A DNA stretch of 63,328 nt, filler included, from Lenisia limosa (taxonomy: Eukaryota; Protista; Breviatea): NCBI GenBank assembly GCA_001655205.1. It is 9 parts of 9 records of this genome, joined end to end, with 100 filler letters (N's around TTAATTAATTAA, not from the genome) between each part and the next. Parts side by side here need not be neighbours in the genome. Positions count along the whole stretch, not along the records: positions 39,226 to 47,929 come from LPNZ01003146.1; 8 more parts are not named here. One strand, written 5' to 3'. This document shows positions 39,003 through 48,056 of this stretch, in pieces (the stretch's first letter is position 1; each line of letters starts with the position of its first letter). The translations under genes and the position numbers were made by a program. The notes beneath the pieces are model-generated. The model ran no database searches and had not been told where the DNA came from. It saw nothing but the letters and a program-made list of their open reading frames with translations.

Positions 39003-39601
39003 AGTGGGGGGGGGGCATGTTTGTTGGGACCCAAAAGATGGTGAACTATACCTGAATAGTATGAATCCAGATTGATAATTAGGGTGGCACTCTGAATCAA
39101 AGCTCTTTCTTTCTGTCTTTTTTTGNNNNNNNNNNNNNNNNNNNNNNNNNNNNNNNNNNNNNNNNNNNNTTAATTAATTAANNNNNNNNNNNNNNNNNNN
39201 NNNNNNNNNNNNNNNNNNNNNNNNNACATTACCCTTATATATTATTAAAATATAATAGATTATATATATGAGTTACACAACCCCCCACCCCCTCTACCAT
39301 GCAAAACAAGTTGGTGTGATCAACAGAATAAAGAGAAAATGGAACAGCCTCCCTGGTGTTTCCATGATTGATGCGCACTTGATTCACGTGACTTGATGCG
39401 TGATGCGACCAGTTATGATACGATCTGCAAGTTGATTAGTAATTTGTTTTAGTAGCTGGATTATCACAATTATATATAAGTACCCCAGTGTTCCTCAATA
39501 CTTTTTTTTTTGCTGAAGCACTACAAGTTGTTAGTGATCTTACTAATAGAATAAATTAATATTTTTAAAACTTATATATAGTTTTGTTTCATTAAAGAAG
39601 A

Positions 39602-42600
39602 ATGATGCGTCCTCCTGTGGTTGTCGCTGTGGTCTTGAGCCTTCTTCTCTTTACCTACTTTCTTGGAAAGCACATGCCTGAACATTATGATGAGGTATTT
39701 TCGCAATGAGCTTATTTTACTGATACCACTATCTTAGGGCAGTTCCAAATCGGGAAAGGTGAAAAGTGAGAACATCAAATGGCACCCAAGCGTTGTATCC
39801 AAAGCAGGTAGGGTAAAAAATACTGTATTATAATGTTGTGATGTTGTGATCTATAATGTTGTGATGTTGTGATCAAAAAATTATATTCAACAGCTTAGGT
39901 TCAGAAAATCAGAAATCATGGTTTCATGGTAGATTGTATATCGTGTGTAGTATTTCACTTTAGTTCGAAAAACAGGTAAAGCATCGATAGTTTTCGAGGA
40001 TTTATCAATAAATTCAGTCTTTTTTGAACCGAAGTAAAGCCCTAATCGTGTGTCTTTTGAGTTTGAGCAATCTGATACAGCAGATCGACAGGAGCTATTG
40101 AGTCAAAGAGGCGCAGTTGTTTGGTTCACTGGTCTGCTTGCAACACTGAGAAATTATCACCACTGGACTAACCTCGGGAGTAAAGATTCTTTTGTTTTGC
40201 TGCTTCCATGCAAAAAGTGCAGTACAGCTTTATAGTCAAAAAAAATTCGATTCTTTTTGAAAATATTTTAAAACTTACTCTGCCAGGGCTTTCAGGGTCC
40301 GGGAAATCCACGATTGCCGTGGAAGTAGAGAAGAAACTTGCTCAGCAGGGTGGGTTAATAGTTAAATTTTCTGTCCCCTCTCTCTCTCTCTCTTTTATTA
40401 TTATTATTATTATTTTGCTTTTGTTGTTTTTGTTGGAGTTAAACTTTTCAGTTTCGATTTTGTAATCTCTATAAAGGGCATGTCAGTTACATTATTGACG
40501 GGGACAACCTACGTTATGGTCTCAATAGAGACCTTGGATTCAGCCCAAGTGACAGGTTAGTGGTAACTACTTTTTTGTAATTGGATTCCATTTTGATTGT
40601 CTTGTTTAGAAATGAGAACATTCGCCGAGTAAGCGAAGTTGCGCGCTTAATGGCAGATTCAGGTAAGATAGTTGGGGTTTTGTTGTTTACTTCAAATGCC
40701 TTTTAATAAACAGGTCTCATCGTACTTGCGTCCTTCATTTCACCTTATCGATCATCACGAGATGAGGCCCGTGAAATGGCAGTAGAAATGTAAGCGTCCA
40801 ACCCTTTTAACCTTTTATATATTTCCCCTGATGCTTAAAAATTTACGTGACTGATACACTCTTAGTGGCTTAGACTTTGTTGAAGTCTTTGTTGATGCCC
40901 CCTTGAGTGTTTTGACTGAAAGAGATCCCAAAGGCCTCTACAAGAAGGCTCTGTAGGATTTTATAGCAACATGAACACAAATCCTTAAATGGCTCATACT
41001 TTTTCATGTTCAGAAAGCTGTTCTAACAGTTGTAGTGATGGCAAAATTAAGCACTTCACTGGTGTTAGCGCACCTTACGAAGCTCCCCTAAACCCTGAAA
41101 TTCACATTGAAACCGATATATTGGTATGTTGCTCTGAAAATCGACATTTTCTTTTTGCAACTGAATCTCTCATAGCTTTTCCCCTTCCTCATATTTTTGA
41201 CAGACAATTGATAAAAGTGCTGAATTGGTCATTGACTTCCTCATTGCCCAAAAGACCTTGATACCAATTGATAAAAAAACAGAAGAGGTTGGCGTTTATA
41301 ATTTTTCAATATTTTTGACTGTTTAGCCATCCCGTGTTGAGGAACCTACCTTCCAAGAGCTTTCACAATCGGAAGAATCCTTGGAAAGTACGTGGCATGT
41401 CAAATGACTGCTTTCATTGTTTTAATATTATTGACTGACGCGAATATGTATCCCTTGCGCTTCTTATTTCTTGTCCTTGTGGTAATCTTTAGATTCGTTG
41501 ATGTTCCGCCACCAAGACTCGGAAGTTGTGGAGCTCTTCATGAATGATGATGAGGTTTGATTCATTTTGTCACGACAGGTATTATATTATACGATATGGT
41601 TAATTCCTACAGGTTTCTTACTTCAAGACAAAGGCGAGTACAATGCCTGTAATTGAACTAACAGATATCGACCTCCAGGTACTGGGTTTGATTGATTTCT
41701 GGACAAATTTTCACTTGTCATTTAGTGGGTACAAGTGCTCTCAGAAGGCTGGGCGTCCCCATTAAAGGGTTTTATGAGGCAAGATGAGTTTCTTCAGGTA
41801 TGCTTGCTGATATAGTGTAGTATTATTTTTCAGTCTATGCACTTCGAGTCAGTTTCCAATGAGGGCATCCTTGAGTCTCTCCCTTTTCCCATTGGTATGA
41901 CTGTTAATAAGTGCTCAGATTCTGGAACACATTTCTACTTGTAAACAAAAAAATAGATCAATTTTGATATCAATTGGGGTTGCCAAAGCAATTCCGTATA
42001 TATCACATCGAGCATTAGTTTCCCTTTGGTCACAATTTAGTTCTCCCTCTCAACAGTACTCAAAAGGCAACCCTAGATGAAGCAAACATTTGTCTTGTGG
42101 GACCGTCAGGTGTGAGTTTCTAAATTGAAAATTGAAACACTCCATGATATGTTTTGGTCAAACTACTATCTGACTTGACTAATCGATCAAGGCGAACTCG
42201 TCGCTGTCTTGATGAACATTGAGATATACCCACACGTTCTGGTATGAGAAGAATAAGCATGTTGAAAAATGGATCTCAAGCTATATTTGTCCTTATATTT
42301 CTGTTTTCATCATTAAGCACGAGAGGAGATGTCGTACATTTGGCTTAGACGATGACAGACACCCCCACCAGGTATGCTTCGGTCCATAAAAAGACTGCCT
42401 TTCTCGATATCAAATTTTTGCTGGTCTATTTCTGAAGTCCTAGGTTTGAGTAACTGTGAAGCGAAGTTTTGTACTGCTTTCTTTCTGCCTTTCTGGTAGT
42501 TAAATGATTAACCTCATAGGCTTTATTGAATAGAGGAGACTGGCTCGTTGGAGGAGACTTGAAAGTGTTTGTTGTTACTCTTGCGACATCGCTACTACTG

Positions 42601-44221
42601 GTTCTTTAAACTAGTTTTATTCGCTAGGTTTTCGCGTATCAAATGGAATGATGGACTTGACAAATACCGTTTAACACCTTTGGAGCTGAGGGATACATTC
42701 ACTGTAAGTAAAGGGTATTCAAGCTTCCCTTTCACCATATGCATATAATGGCTTTTCATTCCTATTTCTTTTGTTGAGAGAGTCACTTCACAGAAACTAA
42801 ATGCGGATGCTGTCTTCGCGTTCCAACTCAGAAACCCGGTTTGCACACCATTCTGCAAGAATCTTCTTTTTTTCAACTATCACATCATGATTAATCTTTT
42901 CCCCATTTAGGTTCATAATGGCCACGCTAAGCTTATGATGTCAACAAAAACAGATCTTCATAAGAAGGGATTTTCTAACCCTGGTATGGGGGACTAATTA
43001 GTTACTCTGTTTCCTCACGATTTGTCTCACCTTTTAGTGTTATGGTTGAGTCCTCTTGGTGGATGGACCAAATCAGATGATGTGCCTCTCTCAGGTAAGA
43101 TGCAATGTGATATAGTAGATGTTTACGTTCATGAATTTCCTAATTTGTAAGGATTGGAGGAATTACACAGAATAACAATATTAATAGTAAATATTCTGAT
43201 TGTTGAAAATACTTGTCTCTCTATTATACAAATATATTTCTTTATCTTTTCAGTGCGTATGAATCAGCATGAAGCCATTATCAGAAACGGTGAGGGCTCC
43301 CTTTATTTGGTTTTATAGTTGTAGAGGTACTTCCCCCCAACACAGTGCTTTCAATTTTCCCTTCCCCAATGCTATATGCTGGACCAACAGAAGTACAGTG
43401 GCACGCCAGAACAAGATGTTTGTGGATATTTACATAATGTTGTCCCTAAAAATAATAATGAACATATGAAAGCATGACATAATTCTCATTTCTAGTGGTC
43501 GGAGGTGCGTCTCACTATATCGTTGGGAGAGACCCTGCAGGTAAGTGGTGATTGTTTTGTTTTTTGCAAGGACTTTCTGATCTTATCCATCAGGAATGAA
43601 GCACCCTGACGGTGGCGATATCTATGACCCTGATCATGGCAAGGAAGTCTTGAGACTTTCTCCTGCGCTGACACATCTCAGCTTTATTCCATTTAGAGTG
43701 GTAAGCTGAGATGGTGACACTCGTGAAAGTCATTTCTAAGATCAGCTTGTTTGATAGGAGAAAAAGAACCACCCAGCTTAATGCCATTTGTTGATCTTTT
43801 TGTGCCAACGTTTACTATTGATGGAGAACAGCATTTTGATAATGGTGACCACTGAAGACTTGACTAACACTTGAATTCACTACTCCATTTTCTTGTGATA
43901 ACGCAACAGGTGGCCTTAGAAAAATCAACGAAGAAAATGGAGTTTGTAGACTTCAGTAGGAAAGATGACTTCCTCTTCATTTCTGGCTCTAAGGTAAGAG
44001 GGAAAAAACCAAAATAGTGCGCTCCTGACTCCTGTTATTTGGCGTTCTTATTGTGACCACTCATCCTTCAGATGAGGGCGTTTGCACGTGATGGTGAAGA
44101 TCCCCCTGAAGGATTTATGGACCCTGAAGGTACGCTTATCCGAAAACTATGTGAATATATTCCAAGTTGATAATATTTAGGTTGGGCGATCATATCCGCG
44201 TACTACAAAAGCTTAAAATGA
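39602..44221 (+). CDS. PAPSS: Bifunctional PAPS synthase (N-terminal APS kinase + C-terminal ATP sulfurylase), ~25 exons, with N-terminal hydrophobic anchor
   Basis: APS kinase motifs [33 protein letters not shown] and RDPKGLY. Sulfurylase motifs [53 protein letters not shown] and ISGSKMR. Stop TGA at 44219-44221. Confidence 0.95.
39948..40044. mobile_element. hAT-type MITE with perfect 8-bp TSD, in PAPSS intron 2
   Basis: ATCGTGTG-TAGTATTTCACTTTAGTTCGAAAAA...TTTTTGAACCGAAGTAAAGCCCTA-ATCGTGTG. Confidence 0.9.
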
Positions 44222-44447
44222 TAGCTGGAGAAGTGAGAGTCGATCGGAGTGGATCTGTGTTTATTTAGTTTAGTGCTTAGTTATCTCATGTGGTCAAATA
44301 GAATGTTTCAGATCAGAGGTGATAATTCCACGCTCCTATCTTCGCTTATATTCATTTTCACAAATATACCTCCCCACTTCTGCCGCTTCATTACCCAAAA
44401 ATTTCCCTCATCCAATAGATTTCTTGGAATGTGTATTAACAATGAGC

Positions 44448-46503
44448 TTAGCACTGCATGTTGTAGTTCTTGACCATATTTTCCATCGATGGGTATGATG
44501 ATTGAGTTCCTCGCGAGAGTACAGATACCGACTAAAAAGAATTACCACAAAAGATGATAGATAAATGACTTGGCCAAAACAAACATAATATCTTTATTAT
44601 TTGTTTTTTATCACCTGATTTATAATCACCTCAATGAGTTTCCCTCCCATTCTAGGCAATAGTCCCCTCACACCGCCACTTTTGAAGCATTGGCACAGGC
44701 CTCTGAAATGGAGAGATTTTTGCAAGTGAAGTACGCGAAAGCTCCGAGGAAACTGTCACCAGCACCTAACCATGTGATTACAAAGCAAAGGGTTGGGGTT
44801 TAATAAAATGTACCATGTATACATAATACATGTAGCACGTTTTGCTTTACCCACCGGTAGTATCAATAGCTTGGACCTTCGGCACCGGGACATGAGTAGC
44901 TTCATCATCGGTGACAACAAGACATCCATTTGACCCCAGAGTAACCTTCAAGAATTACCACTATTACGGATAGAGAAATGCTTGAATGGTGATGCTCCAT
45001 AAGCTTACGATGACTTTCTTGCACCCTAAATCAAGCATCATTTTCGCAGCGCGGGTTGCCTCTTCAATGGACTCTTCTGAAGTAGTGAGAATAAAGCAAT
45101 TCCCTCCATGCCTTTTACCGATAATTTTCACATCAACTCCAGTGATTGCAGCAAGTTCGTTTTCATTTGAGCAAACAACTGTGGCAAATGGGACTGTATG
45201 TTCAGAAGGGAAGGTAGTTCAAAATTAGGACCCCTTATATACAGCAATGAGAAATAAAAAAATAAAAATATCTGGCCGAAGCTGTCCACACCATCACGAG
45301 ATATTGGATTATAGGACCCCTTAAGAATCTCAAACAGAAAGAAATTCCACCTACTGAGCATTCTAATTGCATTCAAATCTGAAGCTGGTGCAGTGTTGAA
45401 TACAGAAACCACTCCTTCTTCTTTAGCCATTATAAGAGCTTCCTTTGTAGTTTCGGGAAGAATCTGTCAATGATGAGTTGGCATTTGAACAAAAATTTAT
45501 AGAAAACAATTGGGTGGAGCACAAATATCTTTAAAAAATCCATTCTTACCTCCATCTGGCACAGCATAACACGGGCATTCTTGATGGCATCAACAGAATT
45601 TCTAACGTCATTGGGCGTTAAAAGACTATTTGCCCCGGGAACAACAACAATGCTATTGCTGCCTATTTCAGGTTAATAAATGGCAAAGCAGAGAACTTAT
45701 AAACATATGATAGTTAAAAAAAATGAAGAAAGGAAGAGAAATGAGAAGAGTGTTTACCATTTGCGTCAACTGAAATTGGAGCCACGCCTGTTGGTGAATC
45801 AGCAGTAGACAAGAGGTACCTGTTTACTTTAGTTAATCAAGAACACCCCCAGCCTCAGTTTACAGTAATAAGATCTTTGTATCTAAAAAGCTGATGTAAT
45901 ATGATACGATGAATAAAAATCTTTTGTATTTCCTTTTTAATTCAAACTCACGTAGTTTCAAGACCAATAGAATTAAACTGTTTTCTCATGTGTTCAGCGA
46001 ACATATCCTCTCCTAAAAACAGTAACAAAATAATCACTAAATCAATTTCTCTGGATCCTGTTCAAACGGACCAAATTTCCTATTGATATTTACATAATTA
46101 CAATCACAAGGTAGTAGAATTACTGATAAGTGTAAGTTAATCTTTCAAAGGCTGATTCCACCATTTGCCAAACCTGTTTTACCGATCATGGAACATCTTG
46201 CACCCAGCTTTGCGGCTTGAACGGCCTTAAATTGTCAGACTCAAACACTAATACAAAAACTCCATGTTTCTGTCTTCTTACCTGGTTGGCACCTTTGCCT
46301 CCACAACCCATCTGAAAATCTTGCCCCATGATTGTCTCACCAATTCGGGGAAGCCTGTTGTGAGGTGAACGTCAAATGTTGAGTGAGCGAAAACCGTCTT
46401 AGCCAGCCATATCCACAATCTTTCCAAAAGCCAACCTTTCAGTGTATGTGATCAGGTCATAATTGGTTGAGCCAACAACAACAACCCCCTTGTTTTCGGC
46501 CAT
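44448..46503 (-). CDS. RBKS: Ribokinase (PfkB family)
   Basis: [33 protein letters not shown]...[15 protein letters not shown]...NTAPA...[12 protein letters not shown]...[12 protein letters not shown]. Stop TAA at 44450-44448. Confidence 0.93.
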
Positions 46504-46788
46504 AATAGATCGGAAAAATGTGTCCAAAGAGCTGAATTCTGATTATTTTTTACGATCAGTTAACCTCGTCAATATACTACTAAAAGCGTAACCTAGCGGC
46601 CTAGCGGGTCTGGGCTGGCATTTGAGACAAACATGGGGGGAACATATTGCTCCTTTATCTCCCCGAATATCCACCACTCATCCTCTTTCATGTTGGAAAT
46701 GAACTCTATAAATACTATAGATTGATTATCGAAAAAATAATAAAGATTTGATCATTAGACCGAATCATCATAACGGATATCCACTAAC

Positions 46789-47760
46789 ATGGCGCAGTCC
46801 CAACGGCCTTCCCTTGAGTGGGCATCTAGAAATCTCCCGAAACCAGATGCTCAGCTTCTAACCAATTTGGAAATTCAGAAACAAGCCCTGTGGGTGAGGA
46901 TAGAACAAACAGATCTACTGGTGTGACTCTTTCCAGTTTCCCTTTCTTACGAAACAGGCACAAACAGCGACAGGAAATTCACTTTTCGTCAACAAATGTC
47001 CAGTTCCTTTCCCGTGATATCAAATATGCCCGATCCGAGCTAAGGAAGTTGGTGGTTTGAAATTCTTTCCATGCAAAAGCAGAACATTCCTTATTTTAGT
47101 GAAAGAGAATTGCCTCTTTATTTTTATTAACCATGTAGGCAAAAACAGGACCGTTTTGCTCTGGAACTACAAAAACAGAAAGAACAAGAAAGAAATATGA
47201 ATTTGGTAAGGGTGATCGAATGCTACACGTCAATCTAAATAAGACTGAATTTCTTGATTTATATCAAGGACAGTTATCTTACTATCATCTAAGCACTGAC
47301 CCCCTTCCCAGCTTGCAGAGAATCTTCGCTGCAGAAAAGGCGTTCTATTCGAGATATTTATGCAAGCGCAGACAGCAAAAAAGAATCAGGCTAGATCTTT
47401 GGTAGGTCTTCTTGGCAACTTACCTTTTTCCATTTTGAGTATGTTCTATTTTTATTAACTTGTAGAATAACTATCGCAACTTCATCACGAACCACATTCG
47501 TCCCAGTATGTCACAATTTCAAGACAACTGTCAAGATAGCATTGATCAAATAAGTAAGCAACTCCGTTATGGAAAGGGGTTGGTGTTCTATTTGCATAAT
47601 CTTAAACTCGGACATTAACGCTATTCAATTTTTTTTAGATATCTTACAATTCGTCAGACAAAGAGACTTTGCAAATAGAAAACCAGCGTCGTGAAATGGT
47701 CCTTCTTTTCAACCAGGAATTGGAGTGGACCAAGCGGATTGAAGCAGCAAAAAGAGGGCG
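46789..47760 (+). CDS. Hypothetical Q/K/R-rich coiled-coil protein; 3' truncated
   Basis: ATG at 46789 followed by AG/GT-bounded exons MAQSQRPSLEWASRNLPKP..., HKQRQEIHFSSTNVQFLSRDIKYARSELR, QKQDRFALELQKQKEQERNMNL and ELEWTKRIEAAKRGREVAR. No recognised motif. Confidence 0.6.
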
Positions 47761-48056
47761 TGAAGTTGCAAGAGGTCGGGGGGTGTATCAACTCTACTGG
47801 AAAGTATTGGAAGGGTATGAGGCTTGTGACAATAAATGAAAAGTAACGAGTCTAAAGTATCCTCCCACACTTACTTCCAATTTCCTTTTATTTTATCATG
47901 TCATAACTCCTTTTTTTTTTTTTTTTTTTNNNNNNNNNNNNNNNNNNNNNNNNNNNNNNNNNNNNNNNNNNNNTTAATTAATTAANNNNNNNNNNNNNNN
48001 NNNNNNNNNNNNNNNNNNNNNNNNNNNNNTATTACATTCTCCAAAAGTATCCGAAA

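Follow-up and report, generated by a model that had tools for sequence, protein, structure and literature searches.

In eukaryotes whose Golgi sulfates glycans and proteins, is PAPS always made outside the secretory pathway? To our knowledge, every such organism that has been studied makes PAPS in the cytosol or nucleus and imports it by SLC35B-type transporters. The question is raised by a PAPS synthase gene of Lenisia limosa, which lies in the window analysed here, a stretch of 63,328 nucleotides joined from nine parts of the genome assembly GCA_001655205.1; positions 39,226–47,929 are from LPNZ01003146.1. At the sequence level the hydrophobic N-terminal leader of this gene is a real and unusual feature, and we consider it plausible, as a tentative reading, that the leader anchors the enzyme with its catalytic body in the ER-Golgi lumen.

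Gene structure and expression

Read from the sequence, the gene is modelled with 30 exons and 29 introns on the plus strand and a predicted bifunctional protein of 666 amino acids (aa) with no internal stops; full-length PAPS synthases (PAPSS) align end to end with this single 30-exon model. Exon 1 (39602–39694, 31 codons) has a GC content of 0.46, like the other exons. Its frame opens just two codons 5′ of the first ATG, contains two adjacent ATGs (39602–39607) and stays open through 39694, where it meets the donor GTATTT, with a leave-one-out score of 5.0 compared with 3.7–12.2 for the gene's other donors. Intron 1 (39695–39737) is of the GT..AG type and ends in TTAG at 39734–39737, and its 43 nt fall inside the 35–209 nt range of the RNA-confirmed introns of this gene. 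A CTGAT stands 14 nt from its 3′ end; this branch-point motif was dropped as support for the intron, being uninformative with CTRAY present in only 10 of the 29 introns.

Exon 2 (39738–39807, 23 codons plus one base) begins the region homologous to APS kinase and matches the conserved N-termini of APS kinase/CysC proteins (NI.WH...V...DRQ.LL). It starts in phase 0 at 39738, has no Met and is directly preceded by an in-frame TAG (39735–39737), so it cannot start translation; exon 1, separated from it by a 43-nt intron of typical length, is the nearest upstream phase-0 exon with an ATG. Direct reading therefore agrees with the earlier note on this DNA, which had described an exon 2 without Met joined in phase 0 to exon 1. 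The in-frame ATG that it placed just past the hydrophobic stretch is also present (39674–39676), as the third in frame given the ATG ATG at 39602–39607.

Intron 2 (39808–40080, 273 nt) holds a very high-copy repeat of ~60 nt at 39983–40045, where the summed contig depth is ~81,000 against 22–37 alongside and where DNA contigs break. Beyond it, exons 3–9 (40081–41123) encode the APS kinase domain, exons 10–12 (41204–41554) its end and an acidic, Ser-rich linker that is longer than in other PAPS synthases, and exons 13–30 (41613–44221) the PUA-like and ATP sulfurylase domains, closing with a TGA stop, after which comes TAG. PolyA RNA contigs show expression and splicing of the gene: they contain ten downstream GT..AG junctions, within the part comprising exons 12–30, and RNA supports the junction at the 3′ end of exon 12 (41552/41611, which can be shifted by 2). 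These contigs join exons 12–14, 20–22 and 24–30, and none of them spans the kinase and sulfurylase halves or exons 1–11.

The encoded enzyme and its relatives

By its sequence the enzyme is a bifunctional PAPS synthase, kinase first and sulfurylase second, with intact catalytic motifs. An exon piece matches Pfam family PF01583 at 28.2 bits (cut-off 21.1), PF01747 matches at 29.2 bits (cut-off 24.3), and PDB chains of APS kinase and PAPSS match the region of exons 3–9. The kinase motifs GLSGSGK (the P-loop), DGDN and FISP lie at residues 72, 100 and 144, and the sulfurylase motifs QLRNP, HNGH and GRDPAG at residues 465, 471 and 566, the ATP sulfurylase domain being C-terminal to the kinase in the same open reading frame. 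With these motifs present, 185 of 213 near-invariant columns kept, and the gene expressed and spliced, the enzyme is probably active.

The metazoan enzymes (human PAPSS1 and PAPSS2, Urechis, Drosophila Papss) have the same order of APS kinase, PUA-like and ATP sulfurylase domains and the same catalytic motifs. Identity to animal PAPSS is 47–53% over the full length, 53% being that of the closest relative compared, and 56–57% over 375 aa of the sulfurylase half; the Lenisia protein differs in its added 24-residue leader, its loss of conserved cysteines and its longer acidic linker. The branch leading to it is very long, only two of its 29 introns coincide with the 11 of Saccoglossus, and in its kinase core it lies slightly nearer to the stand-alone kinases of plant and bacterial type. 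The label "animal-type", which the earlier note had applied, is thus an architectural one that holds for domain order only. With the longest exon (35 aa) as query, an exhaustive HMMER search gave seven weak matches and no full-length relatives; five of the seven are short ATP-sulfurylase exon fragments.

A predicted hydrophobic leader

The predicted leader comprises 24 residues, with an MMRPP head and 17 uninterrupted hydrophobic residues (codons 6–22, 39617–39667) that are followed by a net-acidic flank. This core, a putative signal anchor or signal sequence, has a Kyte-Doolittle mean of 2.6 over its 17 residues and a summed value of -2.05 kcal/mol on the Hessa scale, and nowhere else is the 666-aa model hydrophobic over such a length. 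The N-terminal flank has a charge of +1 to +2, with R3 before the core, and the 15 residues past the core have a net charge of -1. A spacer of only ~19 residues, four of them acidic, separates the core from the conserved kinase domain, which follows directly. The likeness to a type II anchor that had been proposed, a short basic N-terminus plus about 17 hydrophobic residues, is therefore well founded, in that one hydrophobic span of ~17 residues follows a short, positively charged N-terminal segment. The -3/-1 rule, applied by hand, gives weak signal-peptidase sites only (after T18 or G22).

Such an N-terminus is absent from the roughly 230 other PAPS synthases examined: none is hydrophobic in 19 full-length environmental PAPSS cDNA-like contigs or in about 120 plus 73 database PAPSS, nor does one occur among 88 N-terminal APS-kinase fragments. 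One environmental PAPSS (L063) begins MGCVRSKPKSS, which resembles a myristoylation-palmitoylation motif. In addition, literature searches found no membrane-anchored or lumenal PAPS synthase, and the Drosophila Papss paper holds nothing on a membrane anchor.

Is the leader translated?

Four sequence-internal tests favour translation of the leader. Over codons 1–24 the coding log-likelihood is +7.9 bits in frame versus -11.3 and -1.8 bits in the other two frames; genuine coding windows have a mean of 11.3 +/- 3.4, and none of 330 stop-free noncoding windows attains +7.9 bits. The GC content of the same codons is 0.49 versus 0.34 in introns and 0.29 upstream. The 184 nt immediately 5′ of the first ATG (39418–39601, GC 0.29), likely the 5′ UTR and core promoter, are AT-rich and contain no ATG where ~3.4 are expected (P about 0.02–0.04), while the preceding 192 nt have eight; this is as expected if the first ATG is the mRNA's first AUG. 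Finally, an A occupies position -3 of the first ATG, the same as at the inferred starts of three neighbouring genes, and the third ATG (39674) is in a weak context, with C at both -3 and +4.

These results bear on the leading alternative, an ordinary soluble cytosolic PAPS synthase that starts at the third ATG (Met25, MPEHYDE...), the upstream 72 nt being a 5′ UTR that is open in frame by chance. Transcription would then start at or after ~39605, or the first ATGs would be passed by leaky scanning. Counted from Met25 the P-loop falls at residue 48, close to the median of 51 in about 120 PAPSS, so the leader is dispensable for the enzyme itself, and all the other PAPSS examined do without one. 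Of the two TATA-like runs in the ATG-free stretch (~39472–39480 and ~39574–39581), the second lies 20–30 nt 5′ of the first ATG and could set the start near 39605, bypassing the first two ATGs, which also counts against the lumenal reading. Pyrimidine-rich DNA gives hydrophobic open reading frames by chance, and the leader stretch is 65% pyrimidine; moreover, the RNA contigs (from one polyA run) leave a gap at 39396–39905, the span that contains exons 1 and 2. Frame-specific codon usage together with exon-like GC in codons 1–24, the ATG-free 184 nt and the poor context of the third ATG all argue against a start at Met25, which would also leave the selective loss of cysteines (see below) without explanation. 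On balance we consider this soluble enzyme somewhat unlikely, if still a serious contender.

Orientation and cysteine content

If the leader is made, its charges bear on which side of the membrane the enzyme would face. By the positive-inside rule, the charges on either side of the core favour a cytosolic N-terminus and a lumenal C-terminus. K23, straight after the core, weakens this orientation call.

The cysteine content of the protein is a separate clue that the enzyme may reside outside the cytosol, in an oxidising compartment. It has two Cys in 666 aa, whereas 136 homologues have a median of ten and a minimum of five, and the loss is selective: none of six conserved Cys columns is kept, compared with 255 of 353 other conserved columns (Fisher p = 5e-4). 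It does not extend to the adjacent ribokinase-like gene, which encodes ~9 Cys in ~310 aa, so the loss is not genome-wide. In a lineage that evolves fast, the depletion could also have a different origin; a leaderless environmental PAPSS (L075) is also Cys-poor, with five Cys and two of the six conserved columns kept.

The same leader could instead anchor the enzyme to the membrane of the ER, Golgi or another organelle with the catalytic body in the cytosol (N-out/C-in, as in cytochrome P450 anchors). ATP and sulfate are present in the cytosol, and such a tether would concentrate PAPS output beside the PAPS transporter. K23 and H24 abut the core and the head has only five residues, so that the orientation call is soft, and the L063 start hints that tethering at the cytosolic face arose elsewhere. 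The net charges flanking the core nevertheless favour the reverse orientation and Cys depletion is not expected of a cytosol-facing enzyme, and we judge this arrangement improbable.

The 5′ neighbourhood

We consider it very unlikely that the first exon is mis-modelled, either because another coding exon lies upstream, inside or beyond the contig, or because the hydrophobic part is spliced out. Within the piece just two other ATG-to-GT phase-0 candidates exist, at 39268–39309 and 39299–39313 (donor scores 4.6 and 5.7), and there is an RNA contig at 39297–39383, 5′ of the PAPSS gene. Both candidate exons, however, need introns of 424–428 nt, and the RNA contig is unspliced across both of their donors and fits a divergent minus-strand transcript better than an alternative PAPSS first exon. 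The further 926 nt of contig upstream hold transposon-like remnants only. As for removal of the hydrophobic part, in-frame GTs at 39617 and 39620 with the AG at 39666–39667 could in principle excise codons 6–22, but these internal donors score 0–1.9 bits. The internal acceptor at 39667, which a pyrimidine run precedes, was rejected, as it is outside the eight best acceptors and scores below 1.9.

The divergent minus-strand candidate has an ATG at 39365, a minus-strand GT donor at 39297 and a signal-peptide-like METPGRLFHFLFILL.

Comparison with known systems

The combination of a signal sequence with an APS kinase-ATP sulfurylase fusion is not unprecedented. The fusion of the diatom T. pseudonana carries a signal peptide and a transit-peptide-like region for import into its secondary plastid, and the T. 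pseudonana plastid ATP sulfurylase is marked in the table of the same paper as fused to pyrophosphatase (Patron et al. 2008, PMC2275785). The anchor interpretation of the earlier note is partly supported: the leader has the pattern of a signal anchor and is absent from all other PAPSS examined, but a bare signal sequence on such a fusion can no longer be called undescribed. A plastid function here, with the leader as the signal-peptide half of a bipartite complex-plastid leader and sulfate activated in the plastid, is nonetheless highly improbable: the diatom precedent, a kinase core that leans towards plant and bacterial-type enzymes, and an organism that is probably not a typical animal, given its long branch and few animal intron positions, speak for it, but the short spacer with its four acidic residues is unlike a transit peptide, a Phe-type motif is missing past a plausible cleavage site, and the open reading frame ends in an RNA-covered exon with no C-terminal pyrophosphatase domain.

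A parallel in predicted layout is offered by type II Golgi enzymes, which have a short basic cytosolic head, a span of ~17 residues, a short stem and a large catalytic domain. Those concerned with sulfation include the sulfotransferases, tyrosylprotein sulfotransferase and the Golgi PAP phosphatase gPAPP/IMPAD1; they use or clear lumenal PAPS or PAP, and we know of none that makes PAPS.

Known metazoan PAPS synthases are soluble and located in the cytosol and nucleus (PMC3252339). Sulfate activation enclosed by an organelle membrane, with PAPS or APS produced there instead of in the cytosol, is described for Entamoeba mitosomes, Euglena mitochondria and plant plastids. These compartments differ from the one considered here in their endosymbiotic origin, most of their enzymes are separate polypeptides, and they use another type of targeting signal.

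Implications for sulfate activation

The route that we infer for the lumenal enzyme, from use of the first ATG through ER targeting and orientation to the metabolic consequence, would be as follows. Exon 1 would add the 24-residue leader ahead of an otherwise canonical N-terminus, and the signal recognition particle would recognise it during translation. The leader would then serve as a type II signal anchor that stays uncleaved, its removal as a signal peptide being less likely. In both cases the kinase-sulfurylase body would face the ER-Golgi lumen, and PAPS would be made beside the lumenal sulfotransferases instead of being imported. Initiation at Met25 could yield a minor soluble form. This would require a supply of sulfate and ATP in the lumen, which weighs against the lumenal reading. 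That a type II-anchored or secreted, Cys-depleted enzyme makes PAPS in the secretory lumen, and that this bypasses or replaces the cytosol-to-Golgi PAPS transporter, we hold to be possible but rather doubtful.

If the leader is not translated, this is an ordinary, fast-evolving PAPS synthase gene. If the enzyme is indeed lumenal or membrane-tethered, the division of labour between cytosolic synthesis and Golgi import would not be obligatory, and the question would arise of how sulfate and ATP are supplied to the lumen and pyrophosphate is removed from it. It would also mean that there is a naturally Cys-poor, possibly secretion-competent PAPSS, which would have a practical use in view for sulfation systems in vitro and in cells.

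The PAPS synthase gene

The stretch from 39226 to 47929 is AT-rich eukaryotic DNA (GC ~0.38) with very short introns. Reading the three forward frames, with splice sites set by the GT-AG rule and frame continuity, gives a bifunctional PAPS synthase (PAPSS) gene on the plus strand at 39602–44221. It has 30 exons, every intron is GT..AG and 35–273 nt long, and the 666-aa product, an APS kinase followed by an ATP sulfurylase, can be aligned over its whole length with full-length PAPS synthases, with which it shares 47–53% identity. Exon pieces match Pfam APS_kinase and ATP-sulfurylase above the curated cut-offs, as well as APS kinase and PAPSS chains in the PDB. Only two public runs, both of one study, contain this DNA, one of them DNA-like and the other a small polyA metatranscriptome; RNA contigs match ten of the modelled GT..AG junctions exactly, between 41552 and 44179, and thus the gene is expressed and spliced. 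With its P-loop, DGDN, FISP, QLRNP, HNGH and GRDPAG motifs, and with 185 of the 213 columns that are near-invariant among 136 homologues retained, the enzyme looks functional as judged from its sequence.

The earlier note spoke of animal-type PAPSS, a label that is apt for the architecture of this enzyme but not for its lineage, since only two of the 11 intron positions of the Saccoglossus PAPSS gene are shared and the kinase core (residues 41–190; kinase exons 40083–41123) is nearer to stand-alone CysC-type kinase fragments (60–61% identity) than to PAPSS kinase domains (median 52.6%, maximum 57.9%). Unlike the animal enzymes, this core lacks the FRGCT motif. The coding sequence of 2.0 kb is interrupted 29 times, exons average 67 nt, and this extreme intron density, with so few positions shared, points to a lineage that gained introns, or turned them over, on a massive scale. 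Intron 2 holds a ~60-nt repeat (39983–40045) where assembly contigs break and the summed contig depth of the DNA run is ~81,000, vs 22–37 beside it; the repeat probably represents a miniature transposon, or an introner-like element, of very high abundance.

Exon 1 and the start of translation

Exon 1 (39602–39694) has the structure that the earlier note described. It opens with ATG ATG (39602–39607), its frame is ended only by splicing at 39694 (donor GTATTT), and a predicted 43-nt intron whose last base is 39737 joins it in phase 0 to exon 2. Exon 2 shows true homology to the N-terminal end of APS kinases (NI.WH..V...), has no Met and is preceded by an in-frame TAG, and therefore requires an upstream exon that supplies the Met. 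The hydrophobic stretch (residues 6–22) is the sole hydrophobic span in the whole protein, and the in-frame ATG at 39674 (the third counting from 39602; Met25) is present. The leader of 24 residues is a real feature at the sequence level. A 69-aa public protein entry for this contig (P0133, 39602–39811) is an artefact: prokaryote-style gene calling, applied to eukaryotic DNA, translated exon 1, intron 1 and exon 2 without a break and took TGA as Trp.

RNA contigs of the polyA metatranscriptome leave 39396–39905 uncovered. A codon-usage score trained on exons 2–30 against introns and flanks is +7.9 bits for codons 1–24 in their own frame but −11.3 and −1.8 bits when they are read in the other two; for genuine coding windows of equal size the mean is 11.3 ± 3.4 bits, and none of 330 stop-free noncoding windows reached +7.9. 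The 72 nt of the leader have an exon-like GC of 0.49 (other exons 0.46, introns 0.34, the upstream 218 nt 0.29). Ahead of the first ATG lie 184 nt free of ATG triplets, against ~3.4 expected (P ~0.02–0.04), and the 192 nt before them have eight, as would be seen if a 5′ UTR ended at the first AUG. That ATG has A at −3, as have the inferred starts of three neighboring genes. A canonical soluble enzyme started at Met25 would have its P-loop at residue 48, near its usual place in the family (median 51), a TATA-like run at ~39574–39581 could place transcript starts at ~39605, and the leader stretch is 65% pyrimidine; but the coding score, the GC content and the ATG-free run all speak against such a start, as does the C at −3 of the third ATG (which also has C at +4), and we consider it doubtful. 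The leader is probably translated in a major isoform.

Membrane topology and the upstream region

Topology was judged by hand from established rules. The head before the core has five residues with one Arg, the 17-residue core is without a polar c-region, the −3/−1 rule finds only weak cleavage sites, and the 15 residues after the core have a net charge of −1; together these favor a putative anchor that stays uncleaved and lies N-in/C-out (type II). Proteins resident in the ER and Golgi typically have spans of about this length. A cytosol-facing membrane tether would need the opposite orientation, which K23, immediately after the core, makes possible, but the charge pattern around the core favors N-in/C-out and we think the tether unlikely. 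Several indirect lines support a leader that is signal-anchor-like and translated.

A mis-modelled first exon is very improbable. The contig offers only two other ATG-to-GT phase-0 first exons, both of which would need introns >420 nt, and a 115-nt polyA RNA contig at 39297–39383 (positions 998–1084 of L081, the contig that carries this piece and extends upstream) runs unspliced through the donors of both. This RNA contig, 25 letters of which at one end have no match to the genome, fits a divergent minus-strand transcript better than an alternative PAPSS first exon. The minus strand there has an ATG (39365), METPGRLFHFLFILLITPTCFA and then a GT donor (39297). It resembles a first exon, encoding a signal peptide, of a neighbor that is transcribed divergently and has 236 nt of promoter region in common with the PAPSS gene.

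Farther upstream, ORF fragments on the minus strand at L081 300–700 (RFIDDILLIDP, LGYLGIQI) resemble reverse transcriptase by eye and are presumably remnants of a mobile element. Downstream lies a minus-strand ribokinase-like (PfkB-type) gene of many short exons (44640–46520), named by eye and containing GCGGKGANQ, two pieces of which gave no Pfam match at E ≤ 0.01. It is followed on the plus strand by a gene of several exons (46789–47840) that starts MAQSQRPSLEWASRNLPKPDAQ and ends ...YQLYWKVLEGYEACDNK; its product looks coiled-coil-like, and two pieces tested against Pfam had no match.

Comparison with other PAPS synthases

ATP-sulfurylase fragments from an exhaustive search were used to gather 80 metagenome loci, 19 of which are full-length, intronless, cDNA-like PAPSS contigs. 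Two of the 19 served as word-search queries, with 120 matches listed for each, mostly animal enzymes (including annelids, molluscs, echinoderms, tunicates, coral and vertebrates). A hydrophobic stretch before the P-loop occurs in none of ~210 proteins among the matches listed and in none of the 19 environmental enzymes, so the leader is unusual among PAPS synthases. When the first 92 spliced residues were used for a word search, exon 1 turned up in one protein only, which is not evidence because it is the ORF called on this very contig, with TGA taken as Trp; the other 87 matches are APS-kinase N-terminal fragments without the leader. The model's branch is ~3 changes per site long, far from every enzyme compared.

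One environmental PAPSS (L063 321–2423; Ga0307388_10017346) has a 120-residue N-terminal extension. Its opening residues, MGCVRSKPKSS, are similar to the motif at which Src-family kinases are myristoylated and palmitoylated, and this enzyme may be tethered to the cytosolic side of a membrane, as an independent instance of such an arrangement.

In a diatom, Patron et al. (2008; PMC2275785) describe a fusion of kinase and sulfurylase that carries a signal peptide and a transit-peptide-like region for plastid import. The short, acidic spacer between the core and the conserved domain is unlike a plastid transit peptide, making a plastid leader here scarcely credible, and readings beyond those discussed here are less credible still. 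A literature search turned up no PAPS synthase described as ER- or Golgi-anchored or as lying in the lumen of that system, but a signal-peptide fusion as such has the diatom precedent.

Cysteine loss and a possible lumenal location

The model has two Cys in 666 aa, whereas the 136 full-length homologues have a median of 10 and a minimum of five. It keeps none of the six columns with Cys in at least 85% of homologues (C400 adjoins one of these, and that loss may reflect an alignment displaced by one column); of the remaining conserved columns it keeps 255 of 353 (Fisher p = 5e-4). Other long-branch sequences retain three or four of the six, and the adjoining ribokinase-like gene, taken as a cytosolic control, has ~9 Cys in ~310 aa. 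A cytosolic enzyme relocated to an oxidising compartment would be expected to lose its free thiols selectively. The Cys loss supports a lumenal location independently of the leader; it is not proof, because L075, an environmental PAPSS without a leader, also has only five Cys.

Sulfate activation is known inside mitosomes, mitochondria and plastids, according to sources that include PMC2275785. As the earlier note proposed, this PAPS synthase may be lumenal, a reading that we advance tentatively, and PAPS would then be made inside the secretory pathway.
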